Positions 15,097 to 64,000 are shown, counted from the stretch's first letter. The stretch is DNA of 64,000 nt from Asterias rubens (GCF_902459465.1 NC_047066.1:20584001-20648000); one strand, 5' to 3'. The notes: generated by a model from the letters alone, not told the origin. A program made the numbers and translations.

Positions 15097-15246
15097 TCAA
15101 GGCAGCATTTTCTTGATGAGACCAGTGTACATGAACCTCTCTGCTTGTGCTGAGTGACAGGATTCGACCAACTGCTTGGCCTTTGCAGTGATTACTGACC
15201 GCTGCTCAGGGTTCATCAGAAGATCTTTAGCCAAGAAGATAAATTC
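15097..15246 (-). CDS. GLT1D1: GLT1D1 terminal exon ([16 protein letters not shown]...IKKMLP*)
   Basis: ttttcttctttatag|GAA; 49 codons + TGA. Confidence 0.93.
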   Translation of the reverse strand, partial: EFIFLAKDLLMNPEQRSVITAKAKQLVESCHSAQAERFMYTGLIKKMLP

Positions 15247-18200
15247 CTATAAAGAAGAAAATAATGGGAAAAGTAAGTTTCAGATTGAACCAGAGGAAAA
15301 TGGGAAGAGGACACTAGGTGGCAGCAGCCAGGGATCAATTCTTCTCAAAAAATATACCATATTTCTTTACAAGTAAATGTACATAAATATAACGTACTGA
15401 AAACTGTAATGAAAAAAACGATACAAAATTAACATAGAAAAACACAAGACAAATTCTCCCTATTTATTTTTAAACAGAGAAACTATAAAGCCTAACTGCA
15501 AAAAAAAAACCATGGTTGTATGCACAAAGTCTTTCAAATCGTATTAAATTATATTTTATGGTTTACTCATCAAAGGAAAGAGAGACAAATAAAATGGTTC
15601 AAAACAACTGATTTGTGAGATTCTCAGTTCAATGAATTCATTGGTTAACAATTGAAAAATATGACAAAATATATATTCACTGGGAGGGAATTGTACAAAT
15701 AAAATACAATACAATAATAGCATATAAATCAGTGACAGGTAAACATATCAATCAATTAGGAATAATGTATGAGGAAATATTATGCAACAGAAATCAGACA
15801 AATCAAAAGAATTGGAATGTTAAGCAATAACATAAAACATACCAAGACAAAAGTTCATCACAACAATTATGTAATTAAACCAGTGAGATTACATCAAAAA
15901 TGCAATACAAGACAATTCAATTTACAAATTGTTGATGTAAAAACAAGTAATGCAAAGCAATACAGTACATGTATATACATTTACACACTTGTTTAGGGGT
16001 GTGGAGGGTCGAGAGGTTTGTGGCAGTGGGTTTCTACAATAGGATTTCGGGCCTGAGGAAGTTTGAGCTGGAGGGGAAAGTAAGTGTTCCCCCTAGGCTA
16101 ACCATGAAATAGAGAAACCTCAAGCATAAAATACAATTGACATAAAATATCACACATGCTGCAAGAGGAAACAGGTTGCCTACCCCCCCCCCCCCACCCC
16201 AACACCCTCTCCCTTTCTGAGGGATATAACTGTACCCCCTCAAAGGATTTGGGTACTTTTTGTAGCACAAAACACAATGATCACAGATTTACATTGAACT
16301 AAGCCGTTTAAAAATAATGGTAATAGACAGCTTACCTTAAAATATTAGTTGCTGAGGTGCTGTAGTTTTGGGAAACGACATGAACGAGTAAAACATTGTC
16401 ATGAAAAAACGTTTTTACATGCTAACATAATTTAATGATCACTGAGACCAAAATATTTTCATAACATTGCTTTACTCATTTCTCATAACCTACAGCACAT
16501 CAGCCAGTAATATTTTCAGGGAAGCTTTATCTTCAAACTGTGTGAGTTTATTGTAAATCTGTGGACATTGTGTTTTTGGTCCTACAAAAAGTACCCAGAC
16601 CCTTTAACAGTGGTTTACTGGCCAAATGATGGTTGAAATAACACAGGACCAGTAAATATTTTCTCCAAGTGGTTCCACTTGGGCCCAATTTCATGAAGCT
16701 GTTGAGCGGAAAATACTGCTTGACAAAATTCTTTGCTGAGCAAAAATTGAGTGGGACACCAGTCACAACGGTGTCACCTTTTGGCAGGTAACCTGTTTCT
16801 GTTAAGCATAAATTGTCTGTGCTTAGCAAGCTTTGTGCTCACAGGTTTTATCAAATTGTAGCCATTTTTTTTTTTAAACATACACATCTACTAAATATGA
16901 AATTTGGACCAGTGGAGAATCTGACTGTGAAAACTAAAAGAAACCACTAACTGGTCCTGCTGACTAGTTACAGCAAACCCTGGCTAACTCAATGCAATGG
17001 TACTGACCTGTGGAGTGTCATACAGCAGACCAGTCTGTCTATGTTCAACTAGTGTTCTGTTTCCTGGTATGTTGCGTGCTATCACTGGTACACATAAATC
17101 CATAGCCTGCAATGTTACCAAAAGGAGAAAAAATATGTACATTTATTGACCCATCTTGCAAAGTCACAGTGTTTTGTGCCAACTACGGTCAATTGGTGTG
17201 CAAAACTAAGAGTTACTGTCACTTCAATAAATACAATGTACAGCAGCTAAAAATTTATAACAAATTTTAATTTCAGCACTGAAAAGTCTGTCTTATAATT
17301 TGCATGGAATCTTAAACCACTATTTGAAGCACCTAGAATTGACTTTACTGTAGGGCACTTGCCAGTCATTGGTATGTGGGTAAACTGCGAGTGTGCACGC
17401 GAGCTGATATTAGCTTGCAGTACACAAGAAGTTCAAGAATTAAACAGAATCTGGACCAGTAACCATGCAGACGAGCTTGTGTTCTCGAGCATCAAAAATG
17501 CTTGATAACAGTTCAACAGGAAATCTGTCCCAGCAGATTCTGTCCCGCATTTGGTAAATTAATATGAGCTGGAGGATGATAAAACAAAAGAGGGCGATAG
17601 CAGAAGAAGTACACAGTTGAAGTATCAGTACACGTACAGTTCGCCGTATGGGGGACAGAATCTTTGAGGGGACAACAAATCGTGCCACACCAGCACTATA
17701 TACATGTCAGTTATTATTATTAACTACACTGTACCTCTAGTATAGCAGTGGACATGCCTTCACTCAGCGACGAGTTGACTACAGCAGTACATTCTTGCAT
17801 GGCTTTATGGCAGTCATCTTGTGCTAAAGGTTCTATCATCTCAACCCCTGGCAACCTGCACACACAAAGTAAAAAGAAATTAAGTTATTAACAAAAATAC
17901 ATGATGTGAACTGGCGCTCATCACCAGGCACACTCTGTGGTCGAGTGGTTAGCTCAACGTGATAATGGTGAGAGTAACTATAAATATAAATATGAATAGT
18001 AAACTTGCGGGTACAACCATGAGTAAAATCTCTTTTGAAGGAGTGGTGCAGAGCCAATTTGGTCTTGACGTTTCAAACAGTATACTCTGCTCGTCTTCAG
18101 GAGAATGGTGGTTCTAAACCCACCCGAGTAGAATCTGAATTTGAATGTAAGGACACTGCTCACGACCAGACAGAAAGCATCATCAAGAGTGACAGTGTAA

Positions 18201-19284
18201 AGCCACAAAGTCAAGAAAAATTGGTCAGTCAAGGGCGCGTGTTTACCTCCAACCTGACCATGTGTATTTTGGACATGATGCTGTACAGCAGGCCTGGAAT
18301 TTCATCATAAAGAGGGCAACACCATTTTCAATTTGCAAAGGTCACTTCCATTTAAAAATCTTTATGTGCACCAGAGAAGTCACTGCCTTCGTGTAGTTAC
18401 AAGAGGTTCGATCCAAGAGTTTCAACGTTGGACACAACAAAACTTCCTGAAGTTAAATGATGATAAGACAGAGTTCCTTTTATTTGGGTCACGTCAACAG
18501 TTAACTAAGGTTTCAGTGCCATACATCTCCATCGGTGATGCTCGGATAGCTCCCTCGCTGAAAGCTCGGAACTTGGGGGTTATTTTTGATTCATCGATGA
18601 CACTTCAGCCACACATCAACAATATTGTTCGTTTATCATCATATCACATCAGGAATATAGGTAAGATTCGCAAGTACTTGGACAAAAGTGCCACTAAAAA
18701 GGTCATTCACGCATTTGTTACTTCCCGCTTGACAACGGCAATGCTCTTCTCTACAGTCTTCCTAACAACCAGATTTCCCGACTTCAACGGCTCCAAAATA
18801 CTGCTGCCCGCATTGTGACACTGTCTAGAAAATCCTGTTCTATCATCCCCATTCTGAAACAACTACACTGGCTCCTTATCTCTCAACGAATCATCTTCAA
18901 GCTGATGCTCATTGTCCACAAAGCTCTAAATGGCAAGGCTCCCCACTATATTTCTGAACTGCTTCAAGTTTACACTCCATCAAGGAATCTTCGATCAAGT
19001 TCCATTCTTCTCCTCATTGAACCCAAGTCTCGACACTCATGGGGTGACAGGTCTTTTTCTTCAGCCGCGCCACGCATCTGGAACTCTCTACCACTTAATC
19101 TTCGATCTTGTGTTTGTACCGCAAAATTCAAGTCTCTTCTCAAAACTTATCTTATGTCACAGGTTTTCAATGACTAATTTTGTTGTGTCTGTTTTTCTTT
19201 GTGTTGTGTTTTTGTTTTTGTTTTGTTTTTGGTTTTACTGCGCCTTGAACACCCAGCAGGGTGGATATGTGCGCATTACAAGTC

Positions 19285-19325
<41 letters not shown>

Positions 19326-22300
19326 GTTACAGGCATCATACAATGCACACTGGGGTTAAGGTAAAACGGAAACAATAAATACAACCTTTTTAAAAACACA
19401 CACGTCTCTCAATTAACATGATATTTTATCTCACTTAGAGTGAAAGTTCATTATCTTTAATGAAGAGTAAATCCAAGGTGCAGCATACATTCCCTTAACC
19501 TTAACACCACCCCCCCCCCCCCCCCCGCCCCAATATCCCAGTAAGCCCAAACTGAAAAGAACTAAAGATAAAGAGGTACCACATGTACATACCGTTTTGC
19601 GGTTACTTTGACCTTTTCTGCAAACTGATTATCCAAACATGGTCCCATGATGACAAGATAAATACTCCTGTTCTCATTATGCCACTCTGTAAAAAGAAAA
19701 CAAGGAAAAGACCTTCTGAAAAAAAATTCTCACCTGTAGCACATTGTCCATGTTGGACAATGATATTACTTACATATCCAACACAAAATGAAACAGACCC
19801 CCCTGCAGCTTTAAGCCATGTCCGTTCAAGTCTTTGGCGTTCAACTGTGTCTTTAAGAGGTAAGTGAAGTGCATCTACATCCAAGTTTCAAGTTTATCAT
19901 GAATTTGTTATTCCTTTCATGTTGTGTTTTCTGTAACATTTTTTGACTATAGCAACCCTCATCTTTTGATATACACTTTTATTTGAGAATTTGAAAAAAA
20001 AAAATAAATCTTGCTGCCTTTGAAGTAAAAACATTCAGTCAGTAGTGCAAAGATATTGTAGTATGAACAATATCAAAAAGGTATCAACAATGCAAGTGAG
20101 TGAAGTAAAAGACCGATCCATTAGGCTCCGCCCAATCGCACGTGTGAGCAAGAACACGTGAGCCTCTCCAATGCCTCTCTGCACAACTCTGCCGCGTTCG
20201 CCAAAGCATACGCGCACGCATGTTGGACTTTATTTGTCGGACCTTCAAAACGCAATGGGGCGGAGCTTAATGGATCGGTCTATTGTTCCATTGTATAAAA
20301 AGAAAAAAAAACAATCAGAATACCTGAAAAACGGTGAGCCAGATACAATGGATCCTTGACTGGTCTCATTCCAGCCACCAACAGAAATATCTTGCTGTGA
20401 TCTGGAATGCCACACGCATCACGAAGATGGAGGTGAAAATCAAAATGGCTGGAGGGTGAGGTTACAACTCCTAAAAGAGATCAAGAACACAAGTAGACTT
20501 TAATCAAATAATCACCAGGGTCAAAATTCATAAGGTGGATAAAGCAGGAGAACAATCAAGAGTCAAAGTTCATGGAGAACAAAAATGATATGTGAAAGTT
20601 AACACATTTAGTGTCTCAAAGCGCTTCACAAAGAAAAACATTATAAAATACAGAATGAGAAGTTACAAAATGAAATATAAATTATAAATACAGAAAAAGC
20701 AGCAGGAACTGGTTTCATATCAGTTTTTATGTGGTGCGGCAATTGTGCAGGTGACAAGTGTGAGAAAGAGCGATGGCATGTACTCGATGGTACACTTGGT
20801 ATTTTGGCTGGTTAAACTTTTGCCAGTTAGCGAAATGTTTAAATGCTTAGATAATAAGGTTGTTTTGGATGAGCGATCCAGAGCACCAAACTAAAATTCT
20901 TTGTTGTCGGAGTCTGGGTTCCATTCACAGCACTTGTGTCCTCGAGCGAGATACATAATTGTATCCAGACTCAACATCAGCTATTTCCCCACTAATTTCA
21001 AGAGCATCCTTACCTTGTGGCTGGGTGTACAGTCTGCTACCAATGTCAGGCTGCAAAAAATAATTAAATCTTAAGTTAAACTATTTAACTAGGGTAATTT
21101 AACAGTTATTCAAATTGCATTGATTTAAGACCAGAATTCTGGATTTCATGGGAATTTTTTTTTAATGAAAAATGTAAATTTGTCGATCATGGCACTGATT
21201 ACCAGAGAATTCTGCACTCACAGTGCAAAATTTGTAGGCCATACATGTACATGTAAGCGCAGAATGAAAACATTGTTGCCCACAGTATACTGCGGTAGTA
21301 GAAAAATATGTCCAGTTTAGTTCAAAGAAAGGGTCAGAAAGTTTTGTTTATACCTATGCATGCTACACATAACTAAGCATTCTTTGCTCACACAAATAGT
21401 GCAGTAAGTTAAGTGGTAATTGGTGAACTTGAGAACAAATTTCTATGGCAGGAAGAGCCATGAATAATGGAGCTTGGTTTTCCTGAACATGTCTTACATT
21501 ATATTTTGACAATCAGGGCCCAATTTCGTAGAGCTGCTTAAAAATAGAATTTTGATTGACACGTTTCTGCTTAGCAGAAATGAGCAGGATACCAGTCACA
21601 AATTGTAGCCTACATGTGACATGGAAGTTTGAATGGTAACCATATTTACCGTGCTTAACTGATTTGTGTGCTTAAGCAGCTTTATGAAATTGGGCCCAGA
21701 TATTGGAATATATGGTCAATGAAATGCAAATAACCACAACATTTTTGTTTAGTTTGCTATAGCTTTTGCCTTGAGTGACATAGCCTTGCTCAAGGCAGTC
21801 GCATTATTCGCTCCGAAAAGACGCTACTGTAAACCCACCCATATACCCTGTGAGTGGTGCGTGTAATCACACCGCATGACCCACCCGTATACACACTGTC
21901 ACATCGTACGACTACTGTGCACACAAGTCATCCGCACTCGTACCACTAACCGCATGCGGAGGCCGTCAGGCCGACAGCCTTGTTGGGTCTGTAACTTCCG
22001 GGTTTAATGTGTTTCATGAAAAAAAATTCCACTAGTGGAAAAAAATGGGTGGGCTCTTGGACATGCTGGTATGCAGCTCATGAATATGTGTATCTTTCGT
22101 CAGACCAATTGCAGACGACACAGGATGGGAAGCAAATGAATTATTCATTTTGACGTCAAATCACGCACTTCCCTTATCACGACCTTTGGACCCTATCATG
22201 CTCGCTGAGCGTCCGTGGTGGTGGTGTGTGATGTAAATATGTCTTGTCTTTCGCGGGCATTATGGTAATGAGCTGACCGTGGGAACTATTCGCTTATTAT

Positions 22301-25125
22301 AGTAATGAGGTCAGTGGCTTCAACACAGACCCTACAAGGCTGTCGGCCATTTTATCAACTAATATGTAAACAAACAATGACAGTACTTACCCATAATGTA
22401 ACAGCCTGATCCCTCATGGCTTGATTAAAACTCACAAGAAACCTGTTATATTAAAACGAAATTAAAAAATAAACAAAACTACACACAATAATCTTATCAA
22501 ACAGGTCATGAAACTTTTAGTTGGTGCTTCAACAATTGAAGCTCAGTCAGTTTCCATAAATCATGCAATGACAAAACTGTTCCCGTTTCTGCTGTGCTAT
22601 TTTAAGTTGTCTGACAAAACTAACATAAAAACTGTACTAAAGAAATTTATGCAGATTGTATTTAGAAGTGAAAGTCAGTACCCAAAAAAATGAAAGTCAG
22701 TACCCAAAAAAATGAAGGTGAAATCTTGCATAATTGGTTTTATGTTTACATCTGGAGTAGCGTAATAGAAAATAGGAACCTGCATTAGTTACAAATAAGG
22801 GTATAAAAGGATGATCATACGTTTATAAAGCACAGTTTATACTTCACGCCAAAGCGAAGTGAATTTTGCTGATGCAATAATTGATACATACATGTAGGCT
22901 ACCGCTTTTCCAATAATGATGCAAGAAAATTTGCTAATGATGTTGAAACTATCTAAAGCTTAGATGTGGGAGGAAAACCCCAACTGGGGAAAACCCACCA
23001 TTCAGGTAGGAACTGAAACCCAAATGCAAGGTTCTGATCCTTAGCAGGATTGGCACAGCCATCTATGTCCCAAAGGTGAAAGGAGCGGATGAAACCAGAA
23101 CAAAAGTGCCCAGTAGTAATTTGTCTTTAAAATATTCAAAGCTTACCTTGCTTTCATTATGACTGCAGTCATGGTCCGTAATTTCTCATGATTCTTAGGA
23201 TACTCATTGATGTCTGTGCCACCAAACACTATGCCGTACGGTACAGGACACTCTGCAACAGAAAATACCCAAAAGGTCTTAGCACCTATGCAGTATAGAA
23301 TCTTCAATCTTTCTAGACATGCTAGATGCAGAAGCCATTTTTAAAGCACAGATATAATGACCAATTAGCAAGGGAATAAAAGAGTGGGGACAAGTTCTTA
23401 AACGACCGTTAAAAACCGACAGGGTCGTGGCTGCATGATAAAGGCCAAAGGCGGCGCCCGCACGGCCATGACCTTGTCGGTTTTAAATAAGGGAATAAAA
23501 GAGTAGCGACGAGTTCTTACATGGCCGTTTAAAGCCAGCAGGGTCGAATTGCCGTGTGATAAAAGCCCAAGGCGAAGGGAAGCGCACAGCAACGACCCTG
23601 CAAGGTTTTAAACGGACGTTTAAGAACGAGTCACTACTCTTTTATTCCCATTCATAAATGCCCTTTTGTTAAAAAATATTTTTAAAAATACAATTACAGA
23701 CATTTTGACAATTGAAAATTCGAGGTTTAAAATATTTTTTTTCAAAAACTTCGAAGAGTCTGTTGCGCGTGGGTTGTGTGTTCGCGCGCGCACTTAGAAA
23801 TAGATTACGCGCGCGCGCTTAGAAGTAGATTACGCGCTGTTACTAATAGCTATGAATTGCGGTCAAGGTATTTCCCCAAAAGAACCAGTCAATTTGATAC
23901 TCAGTTTCAAAGTGGGTGTGAGCCAGTACATATGTGGGAAGACTTTGGGTGCAATTACATGTAACCCTGTTTTCCTCCACAAGTGTCAAGAACGTAACCC
24001 TAACCCACATTCTGATGATAAAAACACCAGAACTTGAGTTCAGTTCACTAAACCGCTCTGCCTTATTATGCCAGGTAGAAACATGTGAAGCCTTGCAAAG
24101 CCTAAAAAATCTACATTTACAAAAAATCAAAATCTTACCAAGGAGGAGCCTGCCACTACGGTAGGCGTGTATGGCTAGCACACAGTCAGCTGCTGTCATG
24201 ACAACATGATGGTTGAAGTCAACACCACTGCTAAAGCCGTTGCTATCAACTAATTCACTCTCAATGCCATCTTGTTTAAAAAAGTCACTGAAAACATAAA
24301 ATGGAAGTGGTTAGTTTGAATCTCTCACATTTTGTTTGTGTTCTTAGAGTACAATTACACTTTTTAAATAAATATATTAGCAGGGCGGGGTGGCGGCCGG
24401 AAAGGGGGAGCGGTGGAATAAAGCAGCATCTTCACCAGCGTTTCTAACTGACTGAAGACTATGCAGGCAAATCACCGGGCTAACTCAGTGGTCTACAGGT
24501 ACATGTAAGACATCTGCTATTGCAATACAAAGGTCGTGGGTTCGAATCCAACCCGAGTAATTTGCCTGTGGATTTTTTTTTACAGAACTCTGGTAATGTA
24601 CTGATTAGATAAAGTCTCGACAGTCCTTATTACGCATCAGTATAAGGGTAAAAAAAAATATCATTCTTTATCCCTCTGATGCAAAAAAAGGTTATTATGA
24701 CAAATTATTTTTTGATTATATCTGATCTCTTTAGAAACTACATGTAAGGGCATCCTTGTAACTTTTGCTTAGCCCTGCACAACACATCCACTATGGAAAC
24801 ATTTGGGTCCCCGAGAGAGATTTACTGAGATCCTTCCTCACTAACAAAACCCAACACCATAAAATGGTAACTCAACAGCAAAATGTTCGACTCTTGCGGT
24901 ATGCACGTAAGCCCTTGCAAAACATAATTTAAGTTTACTTGTGCATACCTCAGTCCAACACAATCAAACAAAGAACATTCATTTTGAAAGGTTAGGGATG
25001 GCTGTGTGGCTATAGACGTGAAAATTGATGAGATTGATCTATTTAAAGTATGAGTACCTTATTCTATGAGCAGATGAGAAGTTCCCAGTGTGTGCCCTTA
25101 GTGCAGAAAGAACCAAAACCTTCAT
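15097..25125 (-). CDS. GLT1D1: Glycosyltransferase 1 domain-containing protein 1 (GT-B fold), complete: complement(join(15097..15246,17008..17106,17735..17855,19593..19686,20324..20470,21014..21050,22391..22442,23147..23252,24139..24287,25058..25125))
   Basis: Ten GT-AG exons sum to 1023 nt (340 aa + TGA). The protein matches human GLT1D1 colinearly: [77 protein letters not shown] (E-X7-E), ARNIPGN, TGLLY. Confidence 0.96.
16681..16863. mobile_element. Diverged copy of the GGCCCAATTTCAT (Harbinger-like) MITE family
   Basis: Left end gggcccaatttcatgaagctg; degenerate right end; shares internal segments with 21517-21696. Other copies near 32553-32853, 34617-34800 and 56987-57224. Confidence 0.6.
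17008..17106 (-). CDS. GLT1D1: GLT1D1 exon 9 ([33 protein letters not shown])
   Basis: cattgcag|GCT...CAG|gtcagt; 99 nt. Confidence 0.95.
17735..17855 (-). CDS. GLT1D1: GLT1D1 exon 8 (LPGVEM...[16 protein letters not shown])
   Basis: tgtgtgcag|G...GAG|gtacag; 121 nt; carries the E-X7-E motif. Confidence 0.95.
18020..18125 (-). mobile_element. Penelope-like terminal fragment with minimal hammerhead-ribozyme-like motif
   Basis: Minus strand reads CTGAAGA-cgagcag-agtata-ctgtttg-AAAC-GTC (about 18061-18106): CUGANGA core, stem II and GAAA with a very short stem III, the layout known for Penelope-associated minimal hammerheads. Confidence 0.55.
18405..19325 (+). mobile_element. L2-clade LINE, 5'-truncated, frameshifted RT C-terminus with (TTA)n tail
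   Basis: ORFs 18333..18818 and 18815..19177 give [53 protein letters not shown]; frameshift near 18730; ends acaagtc(tta)n. Lies antisense in a GLT1D1 intron. Confidence 0.92.
19593..19686 (-). CDS. GLT1D1: GLT1D1 exon 7 ([15 protein letters not shown]...VTAK)
   Basis: ttttctttttacag|AG...CG|gtatgt; 94 nt. Confidence 0.94.
20110..20281. mobile_element. MITE with 24-bp terminal inverted repeats
   Basis: agaccgatccattaggctccgccc ... gggcggagcttaatggatcggtct (1 mismatch). Confidence 0.85.
20324..20470 (-). CDS. GLT1D1: GLT1D1 exon 6 (VVTSP...[21 protein letters not shown])
   Basis: ctcttttag|GA...TCA G|gtattc; 147 nt. Confidence 0.95.
21014..21050 (-). CDS. GLT1D1: GLT1D1 exon 5 ([12 protein letters not shown])
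   Basis: ttttttgcag|CCT...CAA G|gtaagg; 37 nt; corresponds to human PHAKGKVYVQSQG. Confidence 0.88.
21517..21696. mobile_element. PIF/Harbinger-like MITE with 3-bp CAG target duplication
   Basis: cag|GGCCCAATTTCGTAGAGCTGCTTAA ... TTAAGCAGCTTTATGAAATTGGGCC|cag. Confidence 0.85.
21969..22348. mobile_element. MITE with 24-bp terminal inverted repeats
   Basis: ggccgacagccttgttgggtctgt ... acagaccctacaaggctgtcggcc (1 mismatch). Confidence 0.75.
22391..22442 (-). CDS. GLT1D1: GLT1D1 exon 4 ([17 protein letters not shown])
   Basis: aatataacag|G...TGG|gtaagt; 52 nt. Confidence 0.92.
23147..23252 (-). CDS. GLT1D1: GLT1D1 exon 3 ([16 protein letters not shown]...IMKA)
   Basis: ttctgttgcag|AG...AG|gtaagc; 106 nt. 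Confidence 0.95.
23372..23649. repeat. Long hairpin repeat (23491-23649, ~56-bp arms) preceded by a truncated tandem copy
   Basis: gggaataaaagagtagcgacgagttctta... and its inverse ...taagaacgagtcactactcttttattccc; the first copy (23372-23490) lacks the outer right arm. Likely the end of a non-autonomous DNA element; class not determined. Confidence 0.75.
24139..24287 (-). CDS. GLT1D1: GLT1D1 exon 2 (DFFKQDG...[12 protein letters not shown])
   Basis: ttttcag|T GAC...CTT G|gtaaga; 149 nt. Confidence 0.93.
24472..24660 (+). mobile_element. tRNA-derived SINE (second family)
   Basis: A-box-like taactcagtgg (24481) and B box ggttcgaatcc (24539), then a T-run and A-rich tail. A fragment of the same head lies near 13370-13415. 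Confidence 0.65.
25058..25125 (-). CDS. GLT1D1: GLT1D1 coding exon 1 ([22 protein letters not shown])
   Basis: ATG at 25125; donor AG|gtactc; upstream acceptor tttttgctttccacag just above 25211 implies a 5'UTR intron. Confidence 0.92.
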
Positions 25126-37714: not shown

Positions 37715-37883
37715 CAGGCTCAGAATTACACGCAGGCAACGGACGCCATGGCCTCCAATGCCCCTTGTCTTGGCCTTGGTGCCCCTTCAAAAGTTCCCCA
37801 TTGACATTAAAGATTTTCCAATGGAAGTGCCCTTTGCAAAATAAAAATGGCCTTGCCCTTTTAAAAATGAAATTCCAGGCCTG
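37715..37883. mobile_element. Copy of the abundant CAGGCCTGGAATTTCAT MITE family
   Basis: Ends aatggccttgcccttttaaaaatgaaattccaggcctg. Related copies at about 18290-18362, 45302-45454, 45961-46143, 46880-47105, 52651-52822, 54904-55086 and 63581-63769. Confidence 0.75.
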
Positions 37884-45300: not shown

Positions 45301-48300
45301 ACAGACCTCATAGAGACAATGGCCTCTGTACATGTAGCTTGTTTTTGCCTTGGTGCCCCTTCAAGTTTCTCATAGTCTTAAAGATTTTCCAATGGAGGTG
45401 CCCTTTTTAAAATGGAAATGGCCTTGCCCTTGTAAAGATGAAATTCCAGACCTGACTGTTTAAATCTACTTTGGTGTAAATTTTCATTGTAGCAGGCATA
45501 AATTGTCTGTCAAACACTTTATTCCATCTCATATCCCTACTGTTTAGCTCCCGGGAATCATAAATGTACCGCACCTCATGAAAAAAGTCAACCTTACTTT
45601 TCTGCAGAGGAGGTGTGCGGGGCCCATTGAGTTTTCACTTAGCCCAGGGTGATCAGCGAGGATACTCAGTACCTTCAGAGGACTTCGCTTACACATAGCA
45701 TCTGGGATTAACCTAAAATGCTGCTTTTTGTAACAATTAAAAGGTTTGTGTACTTTTCGTATGACAAAAACACAAACATTCTGATGGTAGAAAGCTTCCC
45801 TTAAAATATTATTTTCATTTTACGCAACTCTCCTGAAAACGTTTTCTTTTTCTCTCTCAAAAACTTGCCGACTAATGAAGCTGAAACATATACAGGTAAA
45901 TTGAAACATCTTCAGTCACGGTGAGTAGGGAATAGGGATTCAAACTTGATCTACAAAAAGCATGCCTGTACATTCGTTTGCTTCGTTTTTGAAATGGCAA
46001 GGGCATCAAGGCATTTCCTCCTTGGTAAAGGGCACCAATGAGGAATTTGTAAAATTCTACTGGAGCATTTCAAGGGCACCACGGCAATGAACAGGGGGCG
46101 TTTGGGAAATCATCTCTGTTGCCTCTGTGAAGTATCAGGCATGGAAAGATACCAAAACCCTTTACAGTTGAGAACAAGAAACTAAGCCAGAGGGTTGGTT
46201 GATACTGAGGGAGATGAGCAAAAAGTTCATGGGGCTGCAGGCGATGTCAGCCCCCCTTGATATTTGCACTGACTTCAGGGTGAGGTAGCGGTAGATCAAA
46301 CCAAGGTACCCACGGGTTGCCTGAAGGCTACAAGCTCCATCCATGGGACTAGATAGGTACATGTGTGTGAAGTGAGAAGTGGGCTGTTGGGAGACGCAGT
46401 CTGAAGGTCTATAAGGGGAGAAAACTCCACAAAGGAGGGGAGAGGAACTTGTGACATTTTGATCGGGGCCGTGGATCATCGAGGGGAAAGTTACATATAT
46501 GAAGAGCTGCAGGCGTTTTTACAAGTTTTTCATGGGCTATGAATGTGTGGAGAAAGTTTTGAAGACACTCAAAACTTTCATGGTTATAGCACTTTTTAAG
46601 TTAACAACTGGCAATGACAGTTTGAGCTCACCTTGGTGCAACAGGAAGATGCATGCATGCCAGTATATTAGTCAGCCAGGAACGCATGTCCTGCATACTC
46701 TGGGCTTCTATCACATACTCAAGGTTGTTCTCTGCCTGGAATTAGAAAAAAATACATCCATTGGTCAATTCAATGTTTCAAAGTCGACATTTTTGATACT
46801 TTAATATTGTTAGGGCAAGGCGATTTGTCCTTTATTAAAAGTACCTCTTACGTGTAGGCCTAGATTTACACAAAAGCCACAGGCCACAGTGGCCATTGCT
46901 TCTGTTGCCATCTGCCCCTCAAAAGCTTTCCATCGACTTAAAGATTTTCCTATGAAACTGCCCTTTGTGAAATGAAAATGGGCTTGCCACCCAAATGGTA
47001 AAATTCATGACTTGAACTCAGCGAGGAAACATTAAATTTCAACAGGAACACCATCAAGGGACACCTAGAATGACCAGGGGCAGTTGACACAGTTGCCTCT
47101 GTATCAGGTGTCTGTTAATTAGTGTCTGTACACAAAGCACAGGTTTTGAGGGCCTCTTTGAACTTATGAATAGAACTTATGAACATTGTCTATTAAATCT
47201 ATGTTCATACACCGTACATGTTTGTTTCCAATTGCAAGTTCAGAGACTGTATAATGAGTGCACGCTTTACAGGGTGTTCCATTAGCAGTAGGGCACACAG
47301 CATTCGTGTACGTGGTATTGTGCATTGTGCACGTGTGCTGTGTGAATGATGAAAGTTTGTCAACCCTTTAAAGTGAGGACCTCCCTTTAGGTCTATTTGT
47401 ACTTAATTCTTGTTTGAAAGCAGTGCCCAGGTTTGAACAAAAATCAACCCAAGGCATCGTGAGTCAGTCACTGAGCTCTCTTTTGTTTAACTCCTTGGTG
47501 CCATTGATGGTAATACACAAATAGGACTGTTTGTCGTCTAATAAGGCAATGGCGACAGTATCTGAAAATGAATAAAGAGGACAACTTAAAGGTTAACAAA
47601 GCTTACAAGTAAGAGTCATAGTTTTTATTTAAGACACACTCATACTTTTAGGGTATAAATGTACATGGATAGGATATACCAGTATGTGTGAAACCAAACA
47701 AATCTGTGAGTTAAATTTACAGTTATTATGTTAGCTCGTGTCGAAACGTGAGGCCATTAAAAATTAGTGCATGCTATACCACCACCACAGGTCATTTTGG
47801 TTGGTAAACAATTTGCAACACCTTCCTTTTTCTCGTCTTTTAATTTGATATTAATGGTACATGCATGTAGTACATGTATACTGTCAACACATTATTCAAT
47901 TAACTGTCAGTGTGTCAGTAATATACTACATGTTGCACCTGCACTTTATTTCTGAATATGCAATTAATTACATAATTGAAGCTGACTGCTGGTCATTTAC
48001 ATTGTGCATCATTCTCATTCACCCATTATGTAAATTGGCTAGTACATGTATGCTCTGGGAGCTATGTAAAATCAGAATATGTAATGAGCATGCAGTATCT
48101 AGGTAACAAAGGATTCTAGAAATTAGAATGGCCATCCGAACAAACACACAACTTTTAATGACAAATGCAATTTGTCAGTTCCACTGGGGTCTCTCTGTCT
48201 CAGCAAGCTCCGCTTAGCTCAACAGACTTGATTAGATCCCTTGTATGTCTAGTTCAAAAGCCACAAGGGAGTTCGTTCTCCTAATGGGATGTTCGGTGAC

Positions 48301-61700: not shown

Positions 61701-63272
61701 CAACAAAGAAAACAGGTGACTGATTGCTGAATTTAAACAACTTCACACAGTCGTTGCTGCGCAAATAAAAGTTGCTCCAAAATCCAGAACCCTAAAAAAG
61801 TTTATTACTTCAACTTAGATATAACAGCAGAAGAAATCAACGAAAATTGACAATATGTTTGATGCTTGAAGCTTCAAAGTGTGTTGATTTGTGCTGAAAA
61901 AGTTACTTTAAAATAAAATTAAAACTTGTGCAAAGTGGTAAATATAAAAAGAGACTTGGAAGTGTCTAGGTGATCTGGCTGAACGAATTACTTGACAGTT
62001 TCATCAATGAAAAGAAGAACAGGCATGACGGGTGTTTCTCCATGTTCTCTCTGTTTTCAGTGTTTACAAACAAGGTAAGACTTATAAAGATATTGCTATT
62101 TGGAGATGAACTTCTTTTTAGCAACACAATGGGTCAATGGGAGAAGACAGGATAAGAATACCTTCCCAGATTAACTCTGAAAAGTTGACACAACAAAACG
62201 TGAACAGCATGCAGGCTAGTATACATAGCATGAGCAGTGCACCTCCTCACTCAAGTGCAGTGAACTCGTAGTTTCACACTCACTGAGTTGCGATTCAAAT
62301 TCCAAGGCCGTCGGGAGAGGAGGGTTTTAATACGTTATCGCAAATACGCAAGCCCAACACGGCAACAGCATTAAGTCTAACCATACAACAACTCTGAACC
62401 ACACCCCATCCATCTACCTAGCCCCCCGCCCCCTTCCCCCACACTGGCTGCTCATCGCCATCGCCTATCGGTCTGTCCTGTCACTGTCTAGTGTCGGGTT
62501 AGTTCAGTTCAGTGGGAAAAGTTTCCATAATATCGATGGCGCCAGTCACCACTTTTTCATGCATTCGGTATCAATATCATATATGGAAAATTAATATAGG
62601 CCCTAGCTAGGCCTAATAATACCTAATTTACCTTTTTGTAAAAATGAGCGGTTGCATCCCATAATAAGTGGTGGCGCCATAATCACCATACAGAAATTTA
62701 TCCGCTTAGGAAGTTAGGGGGGTGGTTCGCGGGAGTCGATAGCAGACGATAGCAAAATAGTTCTAGCTAGGAGTACATGTAGTTGTCCCCTCCCTATACT
62801 TCACCTCTCTGTGGACGCCGGTTCAAAATTAGGACTGGAGGGCTTCTTGCATGTGGATTGGGTTTTTCAGTTCAACTTTGTTGGTGTTAAATTTTCCTTA
62901 AAAAAACCCTTAAATTTCCTCATTGTCTTCTTAAGTTTTTTACCTCACTGGGTAGAACTTCAATTTATGTGTGTGGGTAGTTTGTGTGTGTAGAGCATGC
63001 TTGCAATGCATGCGCTGGTACTCGGTTATATTTACATTGGCTCAATACACAGCGACATGAGGAGTACCAGTTGTGTAGGATGTAGGATTCCTAAACGACA
63101 CATATCTTGTATTTTTTCTGCAGATCTTGTAGCAATTGGCAAATATATTTCAATTTTTTTTCATAATGCTATACATTTGTAACTGCTAACTACATGTACA
63201 TTTTGTTTTCCTGCAGAACCAAATAAACAGACCTCCATGTCAGCATTTGGGTAGCAGTAATTCTTTCCAAAG

Positions 63273-64000
63273 ATGGCAGACCAAGCCATTCCACTGAGAC
63301 TACGACTCATCACGTATCTTACCCCTGGCGTACCCATCGAGTACTTTGAGTTATTGAAGGAATATCTTGAAGAAAAGTTACAATGTTATGTGTATCTTCT
63401 GTCTGAGAGTCGCTGGTCTGGACCGCCTGCTGACCGTGTAGATCCTTTTGCAACAGGAGATGCTGATATTGGTGAGGAAGAGTAGAACGACAGACGGGCA
63501 AAGAGTGTTGGCAATCGCCCAAAAGGGTGGAGGCAATTGCCTTGATGCCCTACGCTTTTCACTGCCTTGTCAGGCCAGGAATTTTATCATTGAGAGGGCA
63601 AGGCCATTGCCATTTTCTGTTTGAAAATCTTCCGTTGGCCTACGTTGGCCCTGGTTTTGGCCTTGGTGCCCCTTCAAAGATTTCCCACTGACTTTAAATG
63701 ATTTTCCAATGGAAGTGCCCTTTGCAAAATGAAAATGGCCTGCCCTTTCAAAGATGAAATTCCAGGCCTTAGAGTCTATTTGAAACTTGTGTTCTATATA
63801 AGCAGCGCCAAGGCAAAGACCAGGGGCAAACAGGCCATGCCTCTTTATAATTCCAGGCCTGCCTTGTTGCCCTAAATTAATCCGTACTGTATTCACGTTG
63901 CAGGATTTGTTTGCTTTCCAACATTCCACCGCATGTTTTTGGATCCAAACAGCACAGTTATTCTCCTAGGTATAGCTGCTGGAAATGCTGACCCTCGCAT
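63273..64000 (+). CDS. PhnD/phosphonate-binding-type solute-binding-protein-like gene, 3'-partial: join(63273..63471,63904..>64000)
   Basis: Acceptor ttttgttttcctgcag|63217; in-frame TAA at 63258 before the ATG; donor ATT G|gtgagg; acceptor cacgttgcag|GA. Protein MADQAIPLRLRLITYLTPGVPIEYFELLKEYLEEKLQCYVYLLSESRWSGPPADRVDPFATGDADIGFVCFPTFHRMFLDPNSTVILLGIAAGNADPR resembles the N-terminus of bacterial PhnD/SsuA-family proteins (T-F/Y-L-x-P, YLxxxL, ADxGFxC, ELL..P...R). Family assignment is from motif recall. Confidence 0.75.
63581..63769. mobile_element. Full-length CAGGCCTG-family MITE with ~38-bp inverted termini in the PhnD-like intron
   Basis: caggccaggaattttatcattgagagggcaaggccatt ... aatggcctgccctttcaaagatgaaattccaggcct. 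Confidence 0.75.

Follow-up and report, generated by a model that had tools for sequence, protein, structure and literature searches.

A sea-star gene for a class II substrate-binding protein that lacks an export signal and is related to the arsenic-oxyanion sensors ArrX and AioX

We analyzed a stretch of 64,000 nucleotides of the Asterias rubens genome (hereafter the window) and found that its end contains the first two coding exons of a genuine, spliced, and expressed Asterias-type sea-star gene. Its product is a soluble protein of approximately 286 residues that consists of one domain and has the class II substrate-binding fold of the PhnD/PtxB/ArrX/AioX family. Among proteins of solved structure, its closest relatives are the arsenic-oxyanion sensors ArrX and AioX, rather than PhnD itself. 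Textbooks describe substrate-binding proteins of the PhnD family as components of prokaryotic importers and sensors that work outside the cytoplasm, and the sea-star protein belongs to a clade in which the export signal is missing.

The initial annotation had described two canonically spliced exons in frame, and all of the coordinates agree with our gene model (table 1). The donor of intron 1 is GTGAGG at 63472 and the acceptor is TTGCAG, with its last base at 63903; in the spliced translation, the phase-1 junction falls within Gly67, and exon 1 together with the start of exon 2 encodes 98 residues. Residues 1–98 were read from the window, and the remainder of the protein was taken from P0001, the orthologue of Asterias amurensis. 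In the structural model of P0001, exon 1 covers beta-strand 1 (LRLITY), helix 1, and the conserved ESRWSGPP...DPF loop, and the start of exon 2 carries a Cys that aligns with Cys106 of AioX.

RNA evidence was obtained from Logan contigs of four runs (X1, X2, X3, and X5), which were placed on positions 62900–64000; runs X2, X3, and X5 represent one organism, a close congener (sister species) of the source of the window. The GT..AG joint 63471/63904 was present in the contigs of X2, X3, and X5 (1083, 1029, and 991 nt, respectively), and thus the predicted junction has RNA support from the sister species. No splice joint was listed for X1, the exon-1 contig of which matches the window with zero mismatches over 63225–63471, stops at the donor, and has 45 letters that match nothing in 62900–64000. 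Because the X2, X3, and X5 contigs cover every position between 63215 and the donor, the TAA that had been noted five codons before the ATG is part of the mRNA, and an in-frame stop within the transcribed exon means that no upstream exon can supply an in-frame signal peptide. The RNA contigs start directly after an AG at 63213–63214, and the X2 contig has 82 extra 5′ letters that lie off 62900–63214; thus, a 5′ untranslated intron and a further upstream noncoding exon are indicated.

Table 1. Features of the sea-star gene and of its surroundings in the window
Feature	Position	Strand	Evidence or remark
GLT1D1-like glycosyltransferase exons	15097–25125	−	NCBIfam scores; 38 kb upstream of the gene
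First coding exon, 5′ untranslated portion	63215–63272	+	X2 and X3 RNA contigs begin matching at 63215
Upstream ORF of 5 codons, out of frame (ATG...TAG)	63238–63255	+	Sequence
In-frame TAA, 15 nt (5 codons) before the ATG	63258–63260	+	Sequence; within the transcribed exon
Start codon ATG	63273–63275	+	Sequence
Coding exon 1, 199 nt (66 codons + 1 nt)	63273–63471	+	Sequence, RNA contigs, homology
Intron 1, phase 1, GT..AG	63472–63903	+	Skipped in X2, X3, and X5 RNA contigs
Interspersed repeat in intron 1, MITE-like, with inverted ends	63569–63769		blastn
Coding exon 2, start (residues 67–98)	63904–64000	+	Frame open to the window end

The sequencing runs that contain this stretch derive from starfish and echinoderm samples. 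The window was colinear over 10.9 kb with an A. amurensis chromosome (locus L083), with a nucleotide identity of 91–95%. In the coding part, 4 of 294 bases differed (98.6% identity) and the splice sites were identical; accordingly, 95 of the 98 window residues were identical to P0001, and the exon 1 translation was 97% identical to its residues 1–66. The orthologue has 286 residues and five coding exons spanning 4.6 kb, the second of which reaches about residue 116 and is followed by three more. In this chromosome-scale assembly, the neighbors on either side are animal genes. The upstream neighbor, on the opposite strand, is SH2B-like; downstream, an ABCB-type half transporter (ABC_membrane plus ABC_tran; L083 18458–24596) follows at 3.9 kb on the same strand. 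The half transporter was considered as a partner and rejected, as it is of the exporter type and is not adjacent to the gene in Strongylocentrotus purpuratus, Lingula, or Lottia; the adjacency is probably a coincidence.

The homology of the encoded protein is far above chance, because exon 1 alone gave 157 protein matches at E ≤ 1e-3, the best at 3e-35, in an exhaustive phmmer search of 1.84 billion proteins. A language-model search led to PhnD/SsuA/transferrin clusters. The 66-aa and 31-aa exon pieces alone, which are too short for such models, had zero matches in Pfam and NCBIfam; P0001 matched Pfam PF12974 (Phosphonate-bd) with 95 bits (E 6e-27; gathering cut-off 27), and eight other family members scored 72–110 bits on this model. 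On the more specific NCBIfam models, P0001 scored below the cut-offs, with 65 versus 261 for TIGR03431 (PhnD), 87 versus 112 for TIGR01098, and 33 bits versus 250 for TIGR04553 (putative selenate-binding protein). The AlphaFold2 model of P0001, which was built from a 40-sequence alignment (pLDDT 94.4, pTM 0.90), together with the Foldseek matches predicts a two-lobed alpha/beta fold with a cleft between the lobes; the top matches of the model were ArrX, AioX, PtxB, and PhnD (E 1e-23 to 1e-16, TM 0.75–0.81). By sequence, ArrX was the closest solved protein with P0001 alone (phmmer 1.8e-16), and a family profile run against the PDB gave ArrX at 2e-38, AioX at 5e-30, PhnD at 4e-18, and PtxB near 1e-17. 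These results bore out the PhnD-type class II fold that had been proposed from the exons. In addition, the protein is not a domain of a known receptor: it is a single domain of 286 residues, a second domain was present in none of the members examined, and a search for domain fusions as a clue to a partner found none. The animal orthologues nearly all end in an aromatic pair (...YY-COOH) after a conserved Ser-hydrophobic motif, which bacterial members do not have; in Asterias, the final residues are ...NY, and the model for Acanthaster is truncated.

ArrX of Chrysiogenes arsenatis (PDB 6x6b, 6xl2, and 7l22), the arsenate-binding sensor of the ArrXSR system, shares 24–25% identity with the protein (Foldseek E 1e-23, TM 0.75–0.79), and both contain the Cys, Tyr (Tyr138 in ArrX), Ser-x-Ser-Gly, His, and Asp-Ser motifs. 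However, ArrX works in the periplasm and passes its signal to a histidine kinase, whereas the sea-star protein has neither a signal peptide nor a kinase partner, and a 4-residue insertion (the WSGP loop), Phe106, and Asp108 are found in the sea-star protein but not in ArrX. AioX of Rhizobium sp. NT-26 (PDB 6esk and 6eu7), an arsenite-binding sensor with 18–19% identity and a TM of 0.79–0.80, is likewise periplasmic and a part of AioXSR, whereas the animal family has no signal peptide and the 80 bacterial loci examined have no conserved kinase or regulator neighbor. PhnD of Escherichia coli (PDB 3p7i) and PtxB (PDB 5o2j and 5jvb) share the Pfam family, the fold, and the oxyanion-holding Tyr, Ser-x-Ser, and His with the protein, but they are more distant (profile E 4e-18 to 8e-18) and, unlike the animal protein, are importer parts. 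The ligands known for PF12974 domains comprise phosphonate, phosphite, phosphate, arsenate, arsenite, glycerol phosphate, and even sterols, and such domains are also reported from thiosulfate and tetrathionate sensors.

The ligand pocket of AioX consists of Tyr88, Cys106, Tyr131, Ser161, Ser163, His192, and Asp210, of which Tyr88, Tyr131, Ser161, Ser163, and His192 are common to PhnD (PMC5908839). In HMMER alignments, six of these seven residues were identical in P0001 (Cys70, Tyr105, Ser137, Ser139, His167, and Asp185), and the structure entry of ArrX Y138A confirms the Tyr counterpart of Tyr105. The seventh position, Tyr88 (PhnD Tyr47), falls at the 4-residue insertion in ESRWSGPP and is not clearly kept, being at best replaced by Trp48. 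In the 40-sequence alignment, Tyr105, Ser137, Ser139, His167, and Asp185 were at least 90% conserved, whereas Cys70 was less so: it was kept in all bacterial members and most animals, but replaced by Asn in sea urchins, by Ser in a sea cucumber, and by Ser or Thr in arthropods. Because Cys70 was replaced in several animal lineages, thiol chemistry cannot be universal in the family. Phe106 and Asp108 are family-specific, with Gln and Val at these positions in ArrX, and Arg11, Glu45, Arg47, Asp57, Asp65, and Asp108 are invariant; this charged set exceeds the needs of oxyanion binding and would also fit an enzyme. As judged from the alignments, the kept pocket residues appear to support an oxyanion-type ligand, without identifying which.

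No signal peptide, lipobox, or membrane segment was found in the protein, which agrees with the initial annotation. In the P0001 model, beta-strand 1 begins at residue 9 and is preceded by 8 residues; in 26 animal orthologues, 5–17 polar residues precede this strand, with a maximum hydropathy of 0.86 or less, as compared with 2.6–3.4, followed by the lipobox Cys, in the lipoprotein paralogues of Rubrobacteraceae. Within the clade, bacterial proteins likewise begin directly at strand 1. These results indicated that the signal-less state is a property of the whole clade, bacterial members included, and is therefore no animal novelty. No PhnE-type permease or PhnC-type ATPase was found beside the gene in A. 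amurensis, S. purpuratus, Lingula, or Lottia, and most bacterial loci were likewise without them; in bacteria, PhnC/PhnE adjacency was observed only in Rubrobacteraceae, which also carry a separate lipoprotein paralogue. Thus, the protein has neither the export signal nor the permease and ATPase neighbors expected of the binding component of a PhnCDE-type importer. The TIGR04553 proteins and the PhnCDE-like transporters of sen clusters belong to the same superfamily and keep company with selenoneine genes in some bacteria; however, TIGR04553-type proteins are exported lipoproteins or periplasmic proteins, whereas the signal-less family is a paralogue encoded after the permease gene.

Orthologues were observed in a broad range of invertebrates, including sea stars, a brittle star, sea urchins, and a sea cucumber among the echinoderms, as well as three hemichordates, a brachiopod, a nemertean, chitons, gastropods, and many bivalves. 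Orthologues in cockroaches, a termite, stick insects, a planthopper, a whitefly, a butterfly, a spider, a tick, and an ostracod demonstrated that the family reaches beyond marine invertebrates. No vertebrate, cnidarian, or other eukaryotic sequence was found among the matches listed, although such blanks are weak evidence. The orthologues keep open frames at 45–62% identity across phyla. In a maximum-likelihood tree of 71 sequences, all animals formed one clade with 100/100 support; molluscs, arthropods, hemichordates, lophotrochozoans, and protostomes were recovered with starred support, and echinoderms weakly. Four intron positions are common to Asterias, Strongylocentrotus, Lingula, and Lottia, and the position of intron 1 is common to S. 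purpuratus and Lottia. Because the animal clade mirrors the species tree and the introns are shared, we concluded that the gene was already intron-bearing in the bilaterian ancestor and that within animals it has been inherited vertically since before the protostome–deuterostome split. The initial annotation had allowed for either retention or horizontal acquisition in invertebrates; the gene tree and the shared introns favor retention from the bilaterian ancestor and speak against a recent transfer. The signal-less clade also includes proteins of Actinomycetota, Chloroflexota, Planctomycetota, Acidobacteriota, and Myxococcota, and no bacterial branch was firmly placed as sister of the animals. 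A sequence titled candidate division TM6 formed a long basal branch. In a search of the literature on PhnD or PF12974 in animals, we found no paper on the animal family; NCBI automatic names of insect and oyster orthologues are "PhnD2" and "PtxB."

To describe the bacterial context, we used 80 of 310 loci that had been found with a four-sequence bacterial alignment; they are mostly from Rubrobacteraceae, Chloroflexota, and other Actinomycetota, together with Planctomycetota, Acidobacteriota, and Myxococcota. In these 80 loci, no universally conserved neighbor was found, the commonest neighbor cluster being present in 10 of them, and no conserved kinase or regulator neighbor was found, with a single response regulator beside P0178. 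The genomic contexts of P0175 and P0178 had no informative neighbors. In contrast to the housekeeping genes that otherwise constitute the neighbors, a sulfoxide/selenoxide synthase (DinB_2 plus FGE-sulfatase) was located within approximately 3 kb of the gene in eight loci of Rubrobacteraceae, two of Planctomycetota, and one contig of uncertain origin. This adjacency involves three bacterial lineages and four different arrangements. In L003, L007, and L019, SenA, SenB, and SelD lie beside the gene, and those of L003 pass the NCBIfam cut-offs (520, 417, and 323 bits, respectively); in L028, a true EgtB (555 bits vs. 345 for SenA) overlaps the gene by 4 nt; in L024, a divergent synthase lies beside it; and in L026, the gene, SenA, and SenB follow each other on one strand. 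The SenA- and SenB-like genes of L026 are 41–44% identical to those of Rubrobacteraceae and lie on a contig titled Klebsiella pneumoniae MAG, which may be mis-binned, because such genes are unusual for Klebsiella. In addition, an operon of Rubrobacteraceae (L005, L006, L008, L012, and L016) consists of a LysR gene, the lipoprotein PhnD paralogue, PhnC, PhnE, and the signal-less gene, and is followed by a convergent senA in L005 and L006. This layout is reminiscent of nitrate transporters, which have a cytoplasmic NrtA-like sensor domain.

PhnCDE-like "putative selenate transporters" have been reported to adjoin sen clusters (bioRxiv 10.1101/2022.04.13.486033; PMC13674229); the signal-less paralogue beside these clusters is not noted in that literature. 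The origin of selenoneine in marine animals has been described as enigmatic (bioRxiv 10.1101/2022.04.13.486033). We regard the selenoneine/ergothioneine adjacency as a lead for part of the bacterial family, and not as a function that carries over to animals, because the tree does not join the animals to the sen-linked branch, most loci have housekeeping neighbors, the window contains no SenA, SenB, or SelD homologue (none below E 0.9 in tblastn), and GLT1D1 is not recognized by the model of SenB itself. The GLT1D1-like gene was considered as a SenB candidate and rejected, as three of its exon translations scored best on NF038229 (GT4, "GPMC system") and none on TIGR04348; NF038229 is the second-best match of one bona fide SenB, so that these families are related. 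Since GLT1D1 was not shown to be SenB, its linkage is no evidence of a shared pathway, and nothing relevant was found in the literature linking GLT1D1 with SenB. A sister relationship of the animals with sen-linked bacteria, based on the ESRWSGPP insertion, was also rejected, since it found no support in the tree and the insertion is probably ancestral to the clade.

Taken together, we proposed, as a reading that is on balance probable, that the protein is an intracellular binding protein that closes around a small oxyanion-bearing molecule and has a sensor, buffer, or hand-over role rather than being an importer part. As far as sequence analysis reaches, this agrees with the initial annotation, which had proposed a cytosolic orphan binder or sensor of oxyanions or phosphonates. 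The protein would stay inside the cell and close its two lobes around the ligand, which would be held by Tyr105, Ser137-x-Ser139, His167, Asp185, and, in most members, Cys70. Ligand specificity would depend on the ESRW loop and Asp108, both family-specific, and the candidates are oxyanions of Se, As, P, or S with pyramidal or tetrahedral geometry. The periplasmic-binding fold works inside cells, as a solute sensor or as an enzyme, in the NrtA-like C-terminal domain of the nitrate-transporter ATPase NrtC, in LysR effector domains, in Thi5, and in MqnA. These cases are functional analogies; no specific sequence relationship with the sea-star protein was detectable. Moreover, the cytoplasmic relatives have a known partner, to which they are fused or with which they are paired, whereas the sea-star protein stands alone, and the way in which a stand-alone cytosolic binder without a known partner would act is not obvious, which counts against the binder model. 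The broader importance lies in a whole substrate-binding clade without an export signal, one branch of which has resided in the genomes of invertebrates for over half a billion years. This animal branch is intron-bearing and strongly conserved, and databases give it automatic names only. Because the protein is small, soluble, and confidently predicted, with a recognizable pocket, its ligand should be findable by simple binding screens. If the ligand is an oxyanion of Se, As, or P, the protein would be a new piece of animal trace-element handling and could be used as a scaffold for intracellular biosensors.

Alternatively, the protein might be an enzyme built on the substrate-binding fold, comparable to Thi5 and MqnA, with an anionic or zwitterionic metabolite as its substrate; the metabolism of thio- or seleno-imidazoles (ergothioneine/selenoneine) is a possible setting. 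We regard the enzyme explanation as possible, though not likely. The position of the bacterial gene beside a sulfoxide/selenoxide synthase in all four arrangements, the many invariant polar residues beyond the oxyanion set, and the presence of Thi5 among the structural matches (Foldseek rank 44) are consistent with catalysis. However, the binding residues of the noncatalytic ArrX and AioX are kept, no catalytic motif is recognizable, and most bacterial loci have housekeeping neighbors. Furthermore, insects, a tick, and a spider carry the gene, and arthropods are reported to lack OvoA.

We also considered, as an unlikely but more novel reading, that the protein is a conserved intracellular chaperone for a reactive Se or As oxyanion (selenite, selenophosphate, or arsenite), which would feed or protect selenoneine/ergothioneine-type biosynthesis in bacteria and would have been kept in invertebrates since the bilaterian ancestor as a cytosolic Se- or As-handling protein and lost by vertebrates. 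If true, it would be the first dedicated small-molecule Se or As carrier of this fold in animals. The bacterial selenoneine/ergothioneine link offers a concrete, testable lead. A strictly selenium-specific carrier, which would hand cytosolic selenite or selenophosphate to selenium-using enzymes, is improbable. Such a role is suggested by the senA-senB-selD adjacency in Rubrobacteraceae and L026, by the gene closing the LysR/lipoprotein PhnD/PhnC/PhnE operon in L005, L006, and L008, and by the putative selenate transporters reported beside sen clusters (bioRxiv 10.1101/2022.04.13.486033; PMC13674229). The pocket Cys common to arsenite-binding AioX would also suit it, and selenophosphate, like phosphite and phosphonates, has one non-oxygen substituent on phosphorus. 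These points are countered by L028, where the adjacent gene encodes a true EgtB, which is a sulfur enzyme, by the score on TIGR04553, which is far below its cut-off, by the tree, which does not set the animals beside the sen-linked branch, and by the lack of detectable SenA, SenB, and SelD homologues in the window. Furthermore, Lepidoptera (Vanessa) keep the gene, although this order is reported to lack selenoproteins.

Many invertebrates make 2-aminoethylphosphonate, and a strict PhnD/PtxB-type binder of phosphonate, phosphite, or phosphate, for example of this compound, would fit the PF12974 membership, the automatic names, and the Tyr, Ser-x-Ser, and His that form the oxyanion side in common with PhnD. 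We consider this explanation more improbable still: the NCBIfam scores for PhnD and TIGR01098 stay under the cut-offs, ArrX and AioX are much closer than PhnD, and phosphonate genes were absent from every bacterial neighborhood examined. In addition, Glu177 of PhnD, which holds the amine of 2-aminoethylphosphonate, corresponds to Asn187 here, as mapped through Tyr212 of AioX.

The chance of bacterial contamination, an assembly artefact, or a dead pseudogene is negligible, even though the Pfam family is otherwise overwhelmingly prokaryotic, as these are refuted by the spliced mRNA, the host repeat in the intron, the colinear sister-species locus with animal genes on both sides, the introns conserved across phyla, the animal clade that mirrors the species tree, and the intact open frames; the initial annotation had likewise argued against bacterial contamination. 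It had also invoked flanking host MITEs, and this holds in part. The repeat inside intron 1 has four more copies in the window (37749–37882, 45338–45453, 18290–18363, and 46913–46984) with 80–88% identity in blastn, whereas none was detected in the 800 bases that precede the gene. Reverse matches of 63569–63616 revealed the inverted ends, and the word depth of the intron 1 repeat in the RNA contigs reaches approximately 86,000. Elsewhere in the window, at 18333–19177 on the plus strand and within the GLT1D1 region, two adjoining ORFs of 161 and 120 aa precede an (ATT/AAT)n run; as read from the sequence, they resemble the C-terminal portion of the reverse transcriptase of a non-LTR retrotransposon.
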